Source: Wallemia ichthyophaga EXF-994
Lineage: Eukaryota > Fungi > Basidiomycota
Reading direction: 5' to 3'
Length of the DNA: 32,000 nt
Assembly (NCBI RefSeq): GCF_000400465.1
Contig: NW_008806277.1
Location: forward strand, 180,001 to 212,000
The position numbers and the translations under genes are program-made. Positions 984 to 27,217 of the stretch are shown in pieces (position 1 is the first letter of the stretch; each line of letters begins with the position of its first letter). A model generated the notes under the pieces. The model was not told where the DNA came from and did no database searches. It saw only the letters and a list, made by a program, of their open reading frames with translations.

Positions 984-2138
984 ATGTTATTAACATCAAC
1001 ACTCCTTGCAATCGTAGCAACTGTCACAGCTCACGGGACTGTCAACCGTATCGACGTTGAAGGCGGACAGTCATTCTCTGGCCCACTAATCGGCTCAAAC
1101 GACAACAGCGGCCCAATCTGGCATGTCTCAACTAGCAGTCCAGTCACGGACCTCCAAAGCAATTCAATGTTCTGTGGTGTTGACGCTATCCCTGGTCAGC
1201 AATCACCTAATATCGGTGCTGGCTCGACTTTAACCATCCACTGGGGACAAGGTTACGCAGACAGTGGTGACCAATGGCCTCATAACACAGGCCCAATCAT
1301 GACCTACATGGCTAAATGTAATGGTGACTGCAGTAACGCAGACTCTGCCAGCTCCAACTTTTTCAAGATCTCCGAGCTCGGTATTGAGAATGGTGAATGG
1401 GTTCAAGCTCAACTCAAGAATGGTCAACCATACTCTGTTCAAATCCCAAATGATGTCCAACCTGGTAAGTGCATTGTGTGACTACTTAATATGGCTAAGA
1501 CTGTGACAGGTAATTACCTAATTAGAACGGAGATCGTTGCACTCCATTCAGGCGTTGAGAGTTACCCATCATGCTCACAGTTCACTGTGACTGGTGATGG
1601 CTCAAACTCATACGCAAGCGCTACAGCTAAATTCCCTGGTGCCTACTTAGCTTCTGATCCTGGTCTTCAAATTGCCGGTGGATCCGTATACAATATTCAA
1701 TCGAGTGTTGAATACCAATTTCCTGGTCCAGCACCCGTTACTGGAGTTCACTTGGGTGTACCTGTTGGTAGAAACGGAGGCAGCAAAAAGTTTGCTGCTC
1801 AACAGCCAAGCTCGGATTCATCACACTCAAGTTACAGCTCGGATAGCCAATCATTTAGCCAGCAATCGCAACAAAATGAATCAAAGTCGCAATCACAATC
1901 AAATGGACCAGACTCAGAATCTGGTAACTCTGGTTGCAACAACCAATACGAACAATGCCTTCAAGCATATGTTCCAGGCAGCGGAGACTTTGATTGTCAG
2001 ACTCAATTTGTCTCATGTCAACAACAGTCACTAGGAAGACGTTGGTCTACCATTCAAAGACCAACCAAACGCTCAAAATCGTTGAAGCGCACTCAACAAC
2101 GCAACGCTAGAATGATGTATCGTACCGTTCATTTGTAA
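984..2138 (+). CDS. AA9 (former GH61) lytic polysaccharide monooxygenase with Ser/Gln linker and C-terminal Cys module
   Basis: Signal peptide followed by His1 (VTA|HGTV). AA9 motifs WPHNTGPIMTYMAKC, FFKI, PGNYLIRTEIVALH and YPSCSQF. One intron, 1465-1509. Confidence 0.9.
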
Positions 2139-2608: not shown

Positions 2609-4852
2609 CTACATAGCTGAGCGTCCAGCGGCTTTTTGTTTGATTAGAGTTGTCAAATACGAACAATCAACTACTTACTTTCGATTGGCAAAAATATTTG
2701 TGAAAGTCCACAGAATATTAAAAGTGCTCCAGAAACATACAGTGGTGTGGGTGATCCCGCTTTAGCCCCAAATGCGTGAATGATTGGTGCGAGTAAACCG
2801 AAAATTCTGTTCAAGCTGCTGCAAAGCGCGTCACCGGTAGCGCGATGTGGTCCAGGGAATGCTTCTGGTGTGTACTTTGGAAAATATCAGTAAGTTGAGG
2901 CTAATAAATCAACCAACTTACAGCAAAGAGAATACCATACATAGCATTTTGTGCGAAGGAGGCAACACATTGGAATGCGAGAATAGAGTCAGGTTGCTTC
3001 GTTGATGAGAACAAGAAGATGAAGATACCGGTTAAGATGGAGAAAATAGACAGTGCACCACGTCTACCAAACCAGCGACCTTTGACTTCAACGAGACCAG
3101 CAGCTATTAATGAACCTGGAATACCCAATACTGCTTGGATGGTGTAATCACGATATGTGTGATAAGTGTCCGAGTTGGTTTTTCCGTTCAAATAAGTTGG
3201 CAAGAATGAGTTGTATAAGGGGTAAGCAAGTCCGATGAGTGCCCAAGACATCATAAGTAAAATTGTGTTGATTGCAAGCTTTTTGGTGGCGAAAAGAGGC
3301 TGCAAAAATCTTAAATGATCTGAAGAGCGAAAGAGCGAGGAAATTACGCACCTTAATATGATTCAAGTTCATATGAGCCAAGTTCATTTTTATGAGCTCT
3401 TTAGTGGAGAATTTCTGTGGCTTTTGATCGAATTCCAGGCCCTGAGCACGAATGGCATCCTTCATCTTCTCCAAAGTGAGTGGGCATTCGACTCTGTTTT
3501 TCTTTGCAATATGCTCAATAACAGCAACAGCAGCCTCATCCTTTCCTTGGCTGAGGTAAAACTATACATAGTCAATACCGTACCTATAATTATGATTAAA
3601 CCAACCTTTGGAGATTCCTTGATCGGCAAAATGAAAGAACGAGTAAGGAACATCAAGAAAGTGAATCCGCCAACAACAAATAGACCATAACGCCATCCAG
3701 CATTAGTGTCCCAATTACAATTGCCGGCATCTGCCATAGCCTGATCACAAGCCCACTGCGGTTGACTGACGAAACCCCAAACAGCGACAGAACTTATTAC
3801 GAGACCGAGTGACCAGAAAGAGGAGAGCAAAGTAAGCAGCCATTGCTGTTTGGCTGGCAGGAATTCAAGCAGAAGCGCTCCATCGACTGGGAGATTACCG
3901 CCCAATCCTAGTCCAACACCAGCTGCCATGGCAGAAAAAGAAACGAAGCTGTTGGCTGATCCGATAGCAGTACCAAATGCACCACAAAGAAAAAGTGATG
4001 CATTGAACGATAGGAGCTTTTGACTGTTATGATGTATAGGTGAAGACAGATTGTACTCACACGACCAAATATGTCAGCTGAAAAGCCGAAGAAAGTAGCA
4101 CCAATAACCAAACCGACATAAAGTGCGAGCTGTGTATGATTAGTAAAAAACTTTTCAGTGTGATTTACTTTAACGTACAGTTGCCATCTCAAAATTTTCT
4201 GGTTGGAATTCATAGGTTATCCAGGTCAAAGAGACGGCAATTGCTCTGGGTGGTGGAAGTGTTAAGTTGGTTCAAATGCGTATGCAGGTGTACTCACTGA
4301 ATCCTGCATAAGTGTGAGTTTTTATGTGAGACCTAGTCAAATTAACGCACCACATGTTATCAGCTGAAAAGATTTAGTTAGGCTATTCGAATGCATGACC
4401 TCACTCACCAAGCCTGCCGCAGAGATTTAGAAGCTGTAAATATCAGAATGAACGACTCACCATCCCATTCCTAGTCATGAGTGAGCAAATATGCAAATCA
4501 ACGCTAACGAAGAAGGCTCACCTGCAACAAAGAAGAGTTGAATCTGATATCTCCCGAAGCCCATTTGATTCAGCGCATCGTTCACCTTAAACCTTGTCAG
4601 CCTTAGCTAATTTTTAATTAAGCAATCTACCATTTGGCATTTTATCTAGTAAATGACTTAATCAGCTCTGATAAAAAGCTTAGGCTTGGTGCTTACAGTA
4701 TAAGAATGCTCCAACCCATATGCTGAGCTGTTATCCAAACTCGATTCCGACTCGCTCACTTGTTTTGTATCGTAGAGAACCTTCTTCTCAGGTGATTGGT
4801 CTGAATGGTTAGACTGCGTCTGTAGCTGCTGTTCCATGTCTTTATTGTTCAT
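2609..4852 (-). CDS. MFS transporter, SV2-like sugar/organic-cation family; about 13 introns including micro-exons
   Basis: Spliced YTIKCQMVNDALNQMGFGRYQIQLFFVAGMGWLADNMWIQAIA, SADIFGR, GGNLPVDGALLLEFLP, YTPEAFPGPHRATG, LPIETAGRSAM*. Confidence 0.9.
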
Positions 4853-22041: not shown

Positions 22042-22968
22042 TTATAACTTCAAGTCATTGAGAATGTTGATCAAATCATTATTACCACCTAGCTTAATAA
22101 TCTCATCAATTGCTTGCTGATGAAGGTGGTTTATAACAGATAAAGTAAAATCAGCAGATTTAGTTTTGGTATTGAGGTAGTTGATAAGGTATAGCTTTAA
22201 ATCATCATCTTTAGTGCGTTGTTTGAGTATATTTATAATTTGATTAGATTTATTATCTGTTAGAATTCCATGTATTATGGGATAACTGAACTTTCCTTCA
22301 GATATATCTTCAGCGAATCCTTTGTTCTTGGTGTAAGATGATTCGAATAGGTTGCAATAATCATCACGTATTTGAAACAGAACACCAATAATGTTAATCA
22401 AAGGGATTAGATTGAGATTTGATGGAGATTTTGATAACATCAATCTCACTGCGAGTCTTAGTAAACCACCAGTTTTATTATTAACCATTTCCAAGTATTC
22501 CTTTGTAGATGGGCAAATGTGATTATCTCTAAAGTATAGATCCATACCTTGACCTCTGTGTAAATTGATAAGTTCTTGATTAACGATATTGATCAGATTG
22601 AAATCTTCAAGGGAGTGTAAATCGGAGAGTGCTTGGAAGTAGATGTAGTTTGCGGTATTAATTGTGGAAGGTATGCCATATATTCTATGAGCAACAGGTA
22701 AACCTCTCCTCTTATCGGAGTCATCTTCAATGTCATCAATCAATAGACTAGCGTTGTGAAGCTTATCAATGACATTTGTGATAATTGAAAGATGAGTCTT
22801 ATCCAAATTTAACCAAATATTGAAAGCATCTATCAATTTCAATCTAAATTGTTTGCCTTGATTGCTATTTAAATAAACAAAAGGCTCTAAAAGCTTATTC
22901 TCATTATGTCTACTCCAATTAAAGTCTAAATTTTTATTCAAATTATCAAATTCGTGCAAATTGACCAT
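22042..22968 (-). CDS. BTS1: Geranylgeranyl diphosphate synthase, intronless
   Basis: LLEPFVY..GKQFR; first Asp-rich motif LLIDDIEDDSDKRRG; LHRGQGMD; KTGGL; second motif QIRDDY; EDISEGKFS. Confidence 0.93.
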   Translation of the reverse strand: MVNLHEFDNLNKNLDFNWSRHNENKLLEPFVYLNSNQGKQFRLKLIDAFNIWLNLDKTHLSIITNVIDKLHNASLLIDDIEDDSDKRRGLPVAHRIYGIPSTINTANYIYFQALSDLHSLEDFNLINIVNQELINLHRGQGMDLYFRDNHICPSTKEYLEMVNNKTGGLLRLAVRLMLSKSPSNLNLIPLINIIGVLFQIRDDYCNLFESSYTKNKGFAEDISEGKFSYPIIHGILTDNKSNQIINILKQRTKDDDLKLYLINYLNTKTKSADFTLSVINHLHQQAIDEIIKLGGNNDLINILNDLKL

Positions 22969-22987
22969 AACCTTGGTTGTAAATACA

Positions 22988-23339
22988 ATGAGTGGATTGA
23001 GATTGTTAATAGAAAAGAGATCCACAATATTTAATCAAAATTTAAACCCTTTGAATATTAGGAATGGCTTCAAGTACCTCAATAAAAGATTGATTGGTCC
23101 AAAGGCCTTGGAGTATTACCCACCTGCGATTGATATTAGATTATTCAAGCAACTCAACAATCTTCCTTCTACTTTCGTTACAAATAAAGAGAAGCAGAGA
23201 TTGTTAGACGTTGATGCAAGGAAGAGAAGGGGTAAATCTCCACCAAAGAAGGGTGAGTGGGCTATTATCTAGCGTAACCATGTCTAACAGTAATTGCACT
23301 ACAGGACAAGGCAGAAGATCAAGTATGAAGAAGAAGTAA
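22988..23339 (+). CDS. RSM27: Mitochondrial ribosomal protein mS33/Rsm27
   Basis: RSTIFNQNLNPLNIRNGFKYLNKRLIGPKALEYYP...RRGKSPPKKGQGRRSSMKKK*. One intron, about 23253-23304. Confidence 0.88.
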
Positions 23340-23370
23340 TTATAACATTAAATTAATATCTTATCTTAGC

Positions 23371-23743
23371 TTAGTATTTCAAAATGATGTAAAGCGCGTG
23401 AATGATCTGATATAGGTGTGAGCGCGGGAGAGCGAATTCAAAGGAATAAAAAAGCCGCTTACACCAGGAATGTATCCCAAAATGGTCAATAAGATGTTGA
23501 TCCAGAAATCTGCGGCACATCCACGTTCTAAGAACACACCAATTGGTGGTATAAAGATTGCGAAAATAATTCTATAATGTGTGAAATTTGGTAGTCATAG
23601 TGGCTCATAACTCACTTAATGATATCCTGCGTATAGGTCAGCGATCGTCAGCGTAAGAATACTCCCCCACTCACTCTTTAAAATTCATTAGGCTGTGTAC
23701 TCTAACCAACGCTATTGAAAACTTACGAGCAAGTAAAAGGCAT
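23371..23743 (-). CDS. PMP3: Pmp3/UPF0057 plasma-membrane proteolipid, 57 aa (not in the ORF track)
   Basis: Exons 23743-23727, 23675 (1 nt), 23626-23616, 23571-23463 and 23406-23371 total 174 nt. Product MPFTCSDIIKIIFAIFIPPIGVFLERGCAADFWINILLTILGYIPGIIHALYIILKY*. Confidence 0.93.
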
Positions 23744-23900
23744 TCTATAGCCTTAATTAGAAAATAAGCCGTATAAGCCCCTTTGAAACTTACTCTTATT
23801 TATAAAAGCTGATCAACGTAGCACTATAAGCCAAGGCCGCCCGAACTAATTCAAATTCCAACAACTCCATTTAAACGTCATCTACAATTAAAAATAGAAT

Positions 23901-25267
23901 TTAAAGCTTATCATCTCCGAATAGTAAGCTAATAGACTCTCCATTATGTTGTCTCCTGATTGCCTCTCCAATCGTCGCGCTAACATCCATCACGTCAAGT
24001 TTTTCACCCAATTTCTCTTTATTCTCCACTTGGGGAATTGTGTTTGTCACTGCGATCTTTTTTATTGGTAGACTTGGAATTATTTCCATCGCTGATTCTG
24101 ACATTAATCCTATAAATATCATTTCCTCAGCTTGGCATTAGCTACGCATAACGTTCTTCTCACCATGTGATACTATAGCGTACACCGCAGTAGCACCCTT
24201 CTTGGCTAACTCAGTTGAAGCCAACTTCATCGTTTGGGCTGAGACTACCATATCATCAACCAACAGAGCCACCTTGCCTTGTACGTTTCCAACGACTACG
24301 TCCATATGGTCCTCCTCTTTGTCATCGCCATTACGGACTCTTGATCTATGAATCAATCCAAAGTTGACATTCAATCTGTCTGCTAACGCTGTGGCTCTGT
24401 ATTTAAATTGATATTGAGATTCCAATCCCAAAACACCAAACACACCTCTTAGCACCACCTGCATCAGGTGAAAACACCACTGCATTCTCCCAATCTGGAA
24501 CGGATGTCTTGATGTAGTTGATCATAATTGGTTCAGTGTACCTGTACGTGTATCAACTTGAACCCCACATCACAGCTATTATCACTAACAAGTTGTCAAC
24601 TGGGATATCAAAGAATCCCTGAGCAATATTAGCCAATTGAATGATAGAAGTCTTTACCCACTTGAATTTGTGATGCGTGGAGATCCAAAGTGATGACGTG
24701 ATCACATCCAGCAGTGGTGAGCATGTTAGCGACCAATTTAGCAGTCTGATTTGTTAGAAATGTGAATGCCGTAACAATTCACTCACTATTGGTGCTCTTG
24801 ATTTATCCTTTCTGTCTTGTCTAGCGTATGGATAATTTGGGATAACTGCCGTAATACGTCTAGCGGAGGCAGTTTTACAGGCTGAGATGGGAGATCAGGG
24901 CTAGCTGATGGCCTCAATGTCAACCTACCATTTGCCAATATAAGCAACTCCATTAAGCTATCGTTTATATCCCCACATCCAGATTGTATGATGAAAACGT
25001 CTTCCTCTCTAACACTCTCACCGATTCTCACGTTAATCTCTTGATTTGAGAATTTATTTACAACGCAAGGCGATAAATTCAATCCAAGTCTGCGGCTATC
25101 AGATTTTACGCTGATTGCTATTAGCTCATAGCCCACCTCTCAGAGACTTCTTTAGCCAATTCTGGGTGACTGTTGCCTGTAAATTCATCTTCTTAGATTT
25201 CTCACGCTCTATTTTCCTCTACCAGATTAATCTCACCAGTTAATATCTTGATTGTATCAGGCCTCAT
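23901..25267 (-). CDS. Ribose-phosphate pyrophosphokinase (PRS family)
   Basis: [18 protein letters not shown]; [15 protein letters not shown]; PYARQDRK; [18 protein letters not shown]; SPDAGGAKR; VDDM. The specific PRS paralog is not assignable. Confidence 0.93.
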
Positions 25268-25383
25268 TGCTTAAGATAGTGGTCGTTGTGATCAAGCGGA
25301 TGACACAGACCAAAGTAGAATACTTAGAAATTAAATTTATAAATTAAGTTATAACAATTCCTCTGCTAATTATTACTTTCTTC

Positions 25384-26244
25384 TTATTTTTTAAGCTTCT
25401 TTTTTTTCTTGTCTTCCTTAACCGGCGATTCATCGATTGACTTACGCTTTCTGTCTTTCGTGTTTTTCTTGTCTGACTTGTCCTTCTTTTCCTTCTTATC
25501 CTTATTTGGTGATGCTTGCTCGTTTACTGTGCCATCTATTCCACCGGTATCAAAACCTGGTGGTCTGAATCTCCACTTGAGCTTATCGGTTGGCTGTTCA
25601 CGCTTAATTGCACCATCTGAAGATGTGTGTTTCTCAAATTTGGGCGCTTTAAGCATTGGTATGTTGTCAGACAATTGTAATCTATGGTGGATTGGCTTAT
25701 CCACTAATTCATGTCATTATAACAGACACTATGAGCAGACAAGACACTCACCAGTAACCAGTTGACCTTGTTTATTTGGTAGCAACAACTTGAATTGATC
25801 CATTTCATCATTTATCGATGCAGATTCAAATTTGTTCCTTGATTCTTTTGAGTTTGAAGTTAACTGTGAGTGTATACTCATCTCACTGCCTTTGACATCG
25901 ATTGTACCTAATTTATTGTCTTTACTATCGAAATCCAGTTTCATTCCTTTCAAATGCTTTGTCTTTATCTATTCCTGCGTGAGTCTTAACACGGAATAGC
26001 GATAAAACGCACATTCTCTGGTACTCTTAAGCATACGATTTCATAATCATCATCTTTAGCCAGCTTTAACCAATCAACGCTGCTAGATTGATCGACTCCT
26101 TTCAATTTGAAGCCTTTTGGTGGTTTGTATCTACTTGCATTAGAATACAATGACTGTTTGTCGAAATATAACTAACTCATTTAATTGCCTGCTCGTTTCC
26201 TCCTCTCCGACACTCTCACTTGGGCTTCTCTCTGGAGAAGACAT
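25384..26244 (-). CDS. RPA34: RNA polymerase I subunit A34.5
   Basis: YKPPKGFKL..EIVCLRVPEN..KHLKGMKL; QPTDKLKWRFRPPGF; Lys-rich C-terminal tail. Confidence 0.8.
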
Positions 26245-26355
26245 GATAGTAAATTTAAAAGAATACATTTAAATGGCGGCAATTAAAACGTTTCAAAATA
26301 ATTGAAAGATATTTACAGTGTCCTTATTCCATTCCGCTGGGCTCAGCGCTCACGT

Positions 26356-27217
26356 TTAGAGCAAGTAGACTGCTGCACCGAGGATGATTGCACCCATAGC
26401 AGCAAAAGCCTTGCTCTTTGATGCAGATGAGTCATCATCTTTATCACCGCTGCCATTGTCGTTACTGGTGCTTTTGTTGGTGCTGCTGTCACCATTCTCG
26501 TCAATGATGTTCTTCTCGCTGTTGCTGATGTTGTTATCGGTGTTGTTGTAAGATTCGCTGTTATCGTCATAGTCAGCCTTTCCAGTATTAGTTGCGTTGA
26601 GAAGCGTCTCATTGAATGTTCCGGTCATACCAGTGAGCTATTCGAGCTGTCAACTACGCAATAAAGATTCAATAATTATCACTCACTCCAAATATTCCTG
26701 TGTATGCGATGTAAGGGTAACCATAATTTGACGCTTCTTCGGTCTGAGCTGGGAGACTGTCTGAAACAATGCGAAGAGAGCTGTTTGCTTCTTAGAGATA
26801 GTGTCTTCTAAATAAGCTTTATACTCACTAGAATATTCCATCTTGACCGACGTCTGGATCGATCGTTGTGGTGAATTCTTTTTCAGTCGCGTCGACGGTA
26901 CCAAGTTGGCTCAATGGTACCATAGCCAACTATAAATTCGTCAGAACGCTCCCATTTCTGACTTAAACCAACTCACAGACTCATTTCCTGCGAAGAGGTA
27001 AATATGTGATTGACCAATATCGCTCAAAGTAACATTATCTCCTTTTTGAGTCCATTTCACCGTGTATTCATTGCCTGCCTCAACCTTATCTCCAGAAAGT
27101 GGTTGAGTGATAGCCTGCTTCAAGTCGGCCTCAATGCGTTCGAGTATACATTCAACCCACAAGGTTAGCGAGAGTTTTTGATGCGATTGCAGATAAAGCG
27201 AAAATTGATTTCAACAT
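26356..27217 (-). CDS. Secreted GPI-anchored protein with Kre9/Knh1-like N-terminal domain, copy 1
   Basis: Signal MLKSIFALSAIAS; ITQPLSGDKVEAGNEYTVKW; N/S/D-rich stalk; hydrophobic tail AFAAMGAIILGAAVYLL*. Four introns. Confidence 0.8.

Follow-up and report, generated by a model that had tools for sequence, protein, structure and literature searches.

A probable one-nucleotide exon in the PMP3 gene of Wallemia

Introduction

Can the spliceosome of Wallemia ichthyophaga retain a single base as an exon? The question arises from a 32,000-nucleotide stretch of DNA from strain EXF-994 of this basidiomycete (contig NW_008806277.1, positions 180,001 to 212,000; we will call the whole stretch the window). 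Near the 5' end of a candidate PMP3 gene, one A lies between what appear to be two short introns. The original prediction, which was made from the DNA letters alone, held that this A must be kept in the mRNA. A single base is the smallest exon that a spliceosome could keep, and very few such exons have been documented. PMP3 is a classic gene for salt and cation tolerance, and in yeast it is linked to both.

Results and Discussion

The PMP3 gene in the window

The gene is on the minus strand. Its parts, and two features upstream of it, are listed below in the order of transcription. (In sequence motifs, slashes mark splice junctions.)

23875-23881, minus strand: CRE-like (CRE/ATF-like) motif ATGACGT, about 130-150 nt upstream of the PMP3 ATG
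23793-23745, minus strand: putative 5'UTR intron, 49 nt, GTAAGT...TCTAAT...CTATAG, ending 1 nt before the PMP3 ATG
23743-23727, minus strand: coding part of exon 1, 17 nt, ATGCCTTTTACTTGCTC, from Met1 to the first two bases of Ser6
23726-23676, minus strand: intron 1, 51 nt, GTAAGT...CCTAAT...AAAG, phase 2 within the Ser6 codon
23675, minus strand: putative one-nucleotide exon, A, the third base of Ser6 (TC+A)
23674-23627, minus strand: intron 2, 48 nt, GTGAGT...GCTGAC...CAG, phase 0 between Ser6 and Asp7
23626-23616, minus strand: exon 3, a micro-exon of 11 nt, GATATCATTAA, from Asp7 to the first two bases of Lys10
23615-23572, minus strand: intron 3, 44 nt, GTGAGT...TTATAG, phase 2 in Lys10
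23571-23463, minus strand: exon 4, 109 nt, the main Pmp3 coding exon, with tblastn and Pfam matches
23462-23407, minus strand: intron 4, 56 nt, GTAAGC...ATCAG
23406-23371, minus strand: coding part of the last exon, 36 nt, IIHALYIILKY and the TAA stop

From exon 1 through exon 3, every position and string that had been predicted is correct to the base. If the four introns in the coding region are removed, then the coding sequence is 174 nt and encodes 57 amino acids (MPFTCSDIIKIIFAIFIPPIGVFLERGCAADFWINILLTILGYIPGIIHALYIILKY). With the 5'UTR intron counted, the internal exons would be 18, 1, 11, and 109 nt.

The predicted protein had been assigned to the Pmp3 family by its sequence pattern, and it matches the entire Pmp3 profile in Pfam (PF01679, positions 1-49 of 49; E = 3.6e-25; 88.2 bits versus a cut-off of 22.9). 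It begins with MPFTCSDIIKII, which fits the fungal pattern M[PA]FT.SD..KI, and its length fits the usual size of roughly 52-57 amino acids. It is 82-95% identical to annotated Pmp3 proteins from other fungi. Among the 16 homologs that we examined, all 16 begin with M[PA]FT[ACG]SD and all 16 have SD..K. Given these matches, we identify the predicted gene as the PMP3 of W. ichthyophaga, which would encode a plasma-membrane proteolipid of the Pmp3/UPF0057 family.

The two features upstream of the ATG recur in all five Wallemia lineages that we compared (see below). A unit of the form GT[AG]AG[TC]...AG is present at the place of the 5'UTR intron in each of them, and 23745-23793 is likely a 5'UTR intron of PMP3. 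Similarly, ATGACGT is found at a similar distance from the PMP3 ATG in all five, with a conserved CTTGGCTT downstream of the motif. ATGACGT is a possible stress-responsive promoter element, and it is separate from the splicing feature.

Splice models for the 5' end of PMP3

The single base is preceded by AG and followed by GT (AAAG/A/GTGAGT at 23679-23669). Introns 1 and 2 each appear complete, with a donor, a branch-like motif, and an acceptor. The branch-like motifs CCTAAT and GCTGAC are 12 and 11 nt before the 3' ends of introns 1 and 2, respectively. At 51 and 48 nt, they are typical in length for the species, whose introns average 61 nt (PMC3849046); introns 3 and 4 are 44 and 56 nt.

We enumerated splice models with donors of the form GT[AGT][AGT]G[TC] only and with introns of at least 35 nt. 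In this restricted enumeration, three models keep the reading frame open into exon 4, and only the model with the one-nucleotide exon yields the N-terminus of the family. If the two introns and the A are instead removed as a single 100-nt intron, the frame shifts and runs into a stop codon, which can be read directly in the sequence; this had been predicted. A single intron of 155 nt (23726-23572), which skips both the 1-nt and the 11-nt exons, is in frame because 12 nt are removed, but it loses the conserved DIIK. Thus the claim that only TC+A keeps the frame was too strong as a statement about the frame, and it holds for the family's N-terminus. (Enumerating GT/GC-AG chains without these restrictions produced 7283 "models", which were not informative.)

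The base is needed to join the flanking exons in frame and to yield the conserved protein. Under the one-nucleotide-exon model, the junction in mature PMP3 mRNA would read TGCTC-A-GATATC (in longer form, TTTACTTGCTCAGATATCATTAAAATTATTTTCGC). Since TCN encodes serine for any N, coding leaves the identity of this base unconstrained.

The motif AGNGTRAGT occurs 8 times in the window, versus 1.7 expected. At just one of these copies, the PMP3 site, is there a consensus donor 35-90 nt upstream.

A second AG/A/GT lies inside intron 1 at 23702-23700 on the minus strand (GGTTAG A GTACAC), and it would give the same protein via introns of 25 and 74 nt. We rejected this site: it requires a 25-nt intron, its donor GTACAC is poor, and it is not conserved.

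The single-base arrangement is conserved across Wallemia

We collected orthologous PMP3 loci via the conserved neighboring gene for GGPP synthase (GGPPS), and we then read the PMP3 region in each of them. Identity of GGPPS to the window's was 96% for the W. ichthyophaga protein, 90% for a Logan contig (L003), 78% for W. hederae, 68% for L013 and L014, and 61% for the group L005-L012. This last group is probably the W. sebi/mellicola group; seven of its contigs, from different samples, are identical to each other, and the diverged L008 retains the AG/N/GT site. We discarded L001 (P0048), which is genomic DNA of an unrelated, GC-richer fungus and has no N-terminal introns.

Over 8.9 kb, the window and the W. 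ichthyophaga assembly GCA_004918235.1 share 99.83% identity, with 13 mismatches and 1 gap; given these differences, the window comes from a different strain. The two do not differ in the PMP3 region, so an indel in the assembly is unlikely. In this second assembly, positions 2832-3629 of our locus L002 are orthologous to 23371-23743 of the window, as are positions 3216-3651 of L004 from W. hederae (GCA_004918325.1).

The original prediction had proposed looking for the AG-N-GT motif in related PMP3 genes. The layout is present in four further Wallemia lineages. W. ichthyophaga and L003 have an A at the single base; L013/L014 and L005-L012 have a T, and the codon is serine either way (TCA or TCT). 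The sites read as follows:

L003: TGCTC/GTAAGT..AATAG/A/GTGGGT..ATATAG/GATATCATTAA; the base is A
L013/L014: TGCTC/GTAAGT..CTATAG/T/GTGAGT..AAATAG/GATATCATTAA; the base is T
L005-L012: TGCTC/GTAAGT..CTATAG/T/GTTAGT..CTATAG/GACATCATTAA; the base is T
W. hederae: TGCTC/GTGAGT..ACATAG/AGACATCATCAAGATCATC; the base is A, fused to the next exon

Introns 1 and 4 are at the same positions in all five lineages, including W. hederae. Introns 2 and 3 are found in four lineages and are absent from W. hederae. In the lineages that have it, intron 2 begins with GTGAGT, GTGGGT, GTGAGT, or GTTAGT, and the base before this donor is A or T instead of the usual G. The introns that flank the single base are just 54-69% alike between lineages, which, for optimal alignments, is about the level of unrelated AT-rich sequences. 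Despite this divergence, every lineage with the one-nucleotide exon has an AG, then one base, then a full donor. The 11-nt micro-exon is kept as GAYATCATTAA in four lineages. Exon 1, which in the window ends with TGCTC/GTAAGT, is also kept across the lineages, with changes at third codon positions only. W. ichthyophaga and L003 have another AG 2 nt past the acceptor of intron 1 (AAAGAG), and it could compete as an acceptor.

In W. hederae, intron 1 is 45 nt and is followed directly by the rest of the coding sequence: TGCTC/intron/AGACATCATCAAGATC, or, at the Ser6 codon, TC/intron/AGACATCATCAAG. In a neighbor-joining tree of GGPPS, W. hederae is nested within the group with the one-nucleotide exon, as ((W. 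ichthyophaga, L003)100, W. hederae)99, and its state is therefore a loss. This suggests that the one-nucleotide-exon arrangement is ancestral to the sampled Wallemia and that W. hederae lost introns 2 and 3 precisely. The resulting junction in W. hederae, TC-A-GAC, is the mRNA junction that the one-nucleotide-exon model predicts.

The spliced coding sequences, as predicted from the five lineages, are under constraint. They differ from each other at 25-41 of the 174 nucleotides, yet the proteins differ at only 0-3 residues. The 57 variable sites comprise 49 at third codon positions, 8 at first positions, and 0 at second positions. Within nucleotides 1-30, all seven variable sites (6, 9, 12, 18, 21, 27, and 30) are third positions, and nucleotide 18 is the one-nucleotide exon itself. 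The three-base rhythm thus continues unbroken from the exon with the ATG, through the single base, and into the 11-nt exon. If the extra base were left out, the variable sites after it would fall on second positions. This pattern indicates strong purifying selection on the reading frame that the putative one-nucleotide exon sets, and it argues against a pseudogene.

Outside of Wallemia, in Laccaria, Saitozyma, and Phakopsora, the introns of PMP3 are placed differently. Among the genomes that we compared, we found no introns at TC/N or between the serine and the aspartate codons outside of Wallemia.

Weighing other explanations

We propose that the A at 23675 is retained as a constitutive one-nucleotide exon and forms the third base of the invariant Ser6 codon. 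From the sequence comparisons, we put the probability of this at about 0.88. The claim that a single A is kept between two introns is supported by the AG/N/GT layout in the relatives, by the loss in W. hederae, and by the substitutions at third positions.

The main product might instead skip both micro-exons via the 155-nt intron described above. TGCTC would then be joined to AATTATT (predicted junction ACTTGCTCAATTATTTTCGC), the internal AG/A/GT would go unused, and the product would be a 53-amino-acid Pmp3 that lacks Asp-Ile-Ile-Lys. Such an intron is in frame, its donor (GTAAGT) and acceptor (TTATAG) both fit the consensus, and it dispenses with a one-nucleotide exon. However, GAYATCATTAA and all four of the internal splice sites have been kept in four lineages while the introns diverged, and we disfavor the skipping of both exons because the 11-nt exon is under coding constraint. 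Also, W. hederae encodes SDIIK contiguously with the main exon, and the homologs that we examined invariably have SD..K. Finally, 155 nt is about 2.5 times the mean intron length of W. ichthyophaga, which is 61 nt (PMC3849046). We consider it very unlikely that this is the main product, but a form without DIIK may occur as a minor isoform. A different way to avoid a one-nucleotide exon would be to restore the frame by a junction without AG or GT, by RNA editing, or by ribosomal frameshifting. We found nothing in the sequence in favor of these routes. They also leave unexplained why, in every lineage with the layout, the single base has AG before it and a full donor consensus after it; why each half has its own branch-like motif (11-12 nt from the 3' end, in the window); and why the junction in W. 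hederae is exactly TC-A-GAC. We view any such route as highly improbable.

The gene could also be a pseudogene, or the assembly could contain an indel, in which case the real intron would be the 100-nt unit (junction ACTTGCTCGATATCATTAA) and the apparent one-nucleotide exon would be a coincidence. What speaks for this is that the Wallemia annotations we checked have no PMP3 model at the locus and that no Wallemia protein is on record. But the two W. ichthyophaga assemblies are independent, with 13 differences over 8.9 kb, and are identical at this site, which makes unlikely the indel that, according to the original prediction, resequencing might reveal. The layout is kept in four other lineages, and the 49:8:0 ratio of third, first, and second positions with 0-3 amino acid changes indicates strong purifying selection on this very frame. 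This explanation seems extremely improbable. The third of the frame-preserving models from the restricted enumeration starts translation at an ATG at 23688, within what we call intron 1, and joins MNFKE to exon 4 via GTGAGT (23674)...ATAG (23572); the upstream exon that encodes MPFTC would then be irrelevant. This ATG is missing from the corresponding intron in L003, L013, and L005, nothing in the family corresponds to an N-terminus of MNFKE, and the exon that encodes MPFTCS is conserved with synonymous changes only. We regard a start at 23688 as next to negligible.

How a single base could be retained

In genomes with short introns, each intron is recognized as a unit (intron definition). If the introns of PMP3, at around 50 nt, are each recognized in this way by the fungal spliceosome, then no minimum exon length would be needed for recognition. 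The same few bases are shared by the acceptor of intron 1 and the donor of intron 2, so these two introns would be removed sequentially, one after the other and never at the same moment. If intron 1 were removed first, the product would contain TGCTCA/GTGAGT (intermediate ACTTGCTCAGTGAGTGGGGG), and the removal of intron 2 would then resemble recursive splicing, except that one base is kept. If intron 2 were removed first, the acceptor of intron 1 would face AGATATC, as ...TTTTAAAG/AGATATC (intermediate GAATTTTAAAGAGATATCATTAA). Either order would leave a normal substrate for the other splicing reaction, and the sequence favors neither.

We considered whether exon 1 pairs with the single A and the donor of intron 2 in the RNA. 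Such pairing is seen in the minimum-energy fold, but its z-score is -1.2, which is not significant, and in other species only a trivial complementarity of GCTC to GAGT is left. We therefore set this pairing aside as a mechanism. We also considered whether intron 2 is a duplicate of intron 1. In within-gene comparisons of introns, the two had no significant similarity in any lineage. A search of Rfam gave no relevant match.

The tiny 5' exons of Wallemia PMP3 might be a control point at which splicing tunes the output of a salt-stress gene. Strictly ordered, recursive-like splicing could yield functional Pmp3, the isoform without DIIK, or frameshifted transcripts, and the choice among these would then set PMP3 output in these xerophilic or halophilic fungi. 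We consider this idea doubtful.

Comparison to known one-base exons

The original prediction described one-nucleotide exons as very rare and named one example, APC11 from Arabidopsis. The example is correct, but the picture is outdated: such exons are also known from CYP621A of Fusarium and from 13 genes of Coprinopsis cinerea.

APC11 of Arabidopsis thaliana has a constitutive one-nucleotide exon (A), as shown by cDNA and mutagenesis (Guo & Liu 2015, PMC4674806). The base lies 333 nt into an interval of 422 nt, and it was still spliced in when it was mutated to T or G (PMC4674806). As in Wallemia PMP3, the base is flanked by AG and GT, is essential for the frame, and was missed by annotation; the behavior of the T and G mutants parallels the natural variation between A and T in Wallemia. 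In contrast, the plant gene APC11 has long stretches of intron around its exon, while the case in Wallemia has introns of about 50 nt on both sides and is known from genomic sequence. What Wallemia adds, relative to APC11, is conservation across the genus and a natural allele that has lost an intron.

In Fusarium, the cytochrome P450 CYP621A has a one-nucleotide exon in about 20 orthologs, and its splicing was confirmed with reads from SRA (Nelson & Syed 2026, PMC12940212). That exon was discovered because the phases of the apparent exons did not join, with an intron-free relative as a marker for length, and pipelines had missed it (PMC12940212). The two fungal cases are alike in that the exon is conserved, is supported by a relative without the intron, and escaped the pipelines. 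They differ in that CYP621A is from an ascomycete and its base is always G (AGGGT) and occupies the middle position of a glycine codon, where it is constrained by coding. PMP3 is from a basidiomycete and encodes a 57-amino-acid membrane protein, and its base is at a fourfold-degenerate third position and varies between A and T.

Among the basidiomycetes, a long-read annotation of Coprinopsis cinerea includes 13 gene models with a one-nucleotide exon (PMC12230235). The splicing machinery of the phylum can therefore evidently cope with such exons. C. cinerea resembles Wallemia in having short introns, and it has many micro-exons. The C. cinerea set is a genome-wide catalog, with no analysis of individual genes or of their evolution (PMC12230235).

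The arrangement in PMP3 also resembles two other kinds of splicing. Recursive splice sites, in Ubx of Drosophila and in other genes, are ratchet points that subdivide very long introns; they read AG/GT, and no base is kept. As at these sites, an acceptor lies next to a donor in PMP3, and if intron 1 is removed first, then exon 1 would precede a donor that is used in the next step. But the introns of PMP3 are about 50 nt, and both are complete before splicing. One base, which the frame requires, lies between the AG and the GT and would be kept, so the PMP3 site falls outside the strict definition of a recursive splice site. In the stwintrons of filamentous fungi, a splice signal of the outer intron is split by an inner intron and forms only once the latter has been excised; nothing is retained. 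Introns 1 and 2 of PMP3 are likewise short fungal introns that are in contact and would be removed consecutively. They do not form a stwintron, because their GT, branch-like, and AG signals are all intact before splicing.

Overall, Wallemia PMP3 appears to add a well-supported case to the rare one-nucleotide exons that were already known. The genus provides a natural series, made up of two lineages with A, two or more with T, the precise intron-loss allele of W. hederae, and up to eight introns in a coding sequence of 174 nt. This series is a compact system for studying how introns that share a boundary are removed, and in what order.

PMP3 is missing from two Wallemia annotations

In the NCBI annotations of W. 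ichthyophaga (GCA_004918235.1, at L002 2832-3629) and W. hederae (GCA_004918325.1, at L004 3216-3651), there is no PMP3 model at the locus. W. hederae lacks a gene model even though its PMP3 is an ordinary gene with three exons. The exact 57-amino-acid Pmp3 sequences of three Wallemia lineages are absent from a collection of 15 billion proteins. Searching for homologs with the whole protein or with just its first 46 amino acids yielded no match at 100% identity, no entry from Wallemia, and no matching N-terminus. Because PMP3 is unannotated and the protein collection has no Pmp3 from Wallemia, comparisons of gene content would score PMP3 as missing. In other words, a salt-tolerance gene is invisible to annotation in a model halophile.

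We also searched metagenome contigs from JGI with degenerate patterns for the spliced junction and found 0 matches; this carries no weight against splicing. Among the papers that we searched, we found none that links Wallemia to the exon structure of PMP3.

Other observations on PMP3 and its neighborhood

The PMP3 genes of some relatives are more fragmented. In L005 (2824-3433), as well as in L006, L007, and L009-L012, the 174-nt coding sequence contains eight introns of 50-60 nt, and the exons are 12, 5, 1, 11, 59, 10, 13, 27, and 36 nt. This corresponds to about 46 introns per kb, versus a genome average of about 2.4 introns per gene. The locus L008 (747-1353) is a diverged variant of this type. 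Introns 5 and 6 of the L005-type gene share their first 15 nt (GTTAGTTGAG[C/A]GTAT), and their overall similarity is not significant.

In L013 (1613-1660, and the equivalent positions of L014), an exon that ends with ...GAAAGA is followed by a 44-nt intron (GTGAGT...AATTAG), and the next exon begins with TGCCATTT. The only genomic ATG nearby runs into a stop codon. From this arrangement, the PMP3 start codon in L013/L014 appears to be built by splicing (A/TG), so that the ATG would exist in the mRNA only.

The genes around PMP3 are tightly packed (window positions of about 22968-23371). The PMP3 stop codon is about 31 nt from the stop codon of the convergent gene MRP-S33, whose start is about 19 nt from the start of the divergent GGPP synthase gene (in L002 coordinates).

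Two of the neighboring gene models probably need correction. In the window, the open reading frame for GGPP synthase (22042-23025, minus strand) is continuous through ...EGKFSYPIIHGILTDNKSNQ... In the NCBI model for W. ichthyophaga (P0128), which has 298 amino acids, SYPIIHGILTD is read as N and 10 residues are missing, while the L003 homolog has 308 amino acids. The NCBI model probably mistakes 30 nt of coding sequence for an intron and thereby loses a conserved motif. On the other side of PMP3, at 1-2831 of L002 (about 24140-26968 of the window, minus strand), a single model of 619 amino acids combines the domains Kre9_KNH, RNA_polI_A34, and PRPP-synthetase. W. hederae has three separate genes where the W. 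ichthyophaga annotation has this fusion, which is probably a merged gene model.

Elsewhere in the window, an open reading frame at 1491-2138 (plus strand) has a match to the AA9 (lytic polysaccharide monooxygenase) domain (E = 8e-15).
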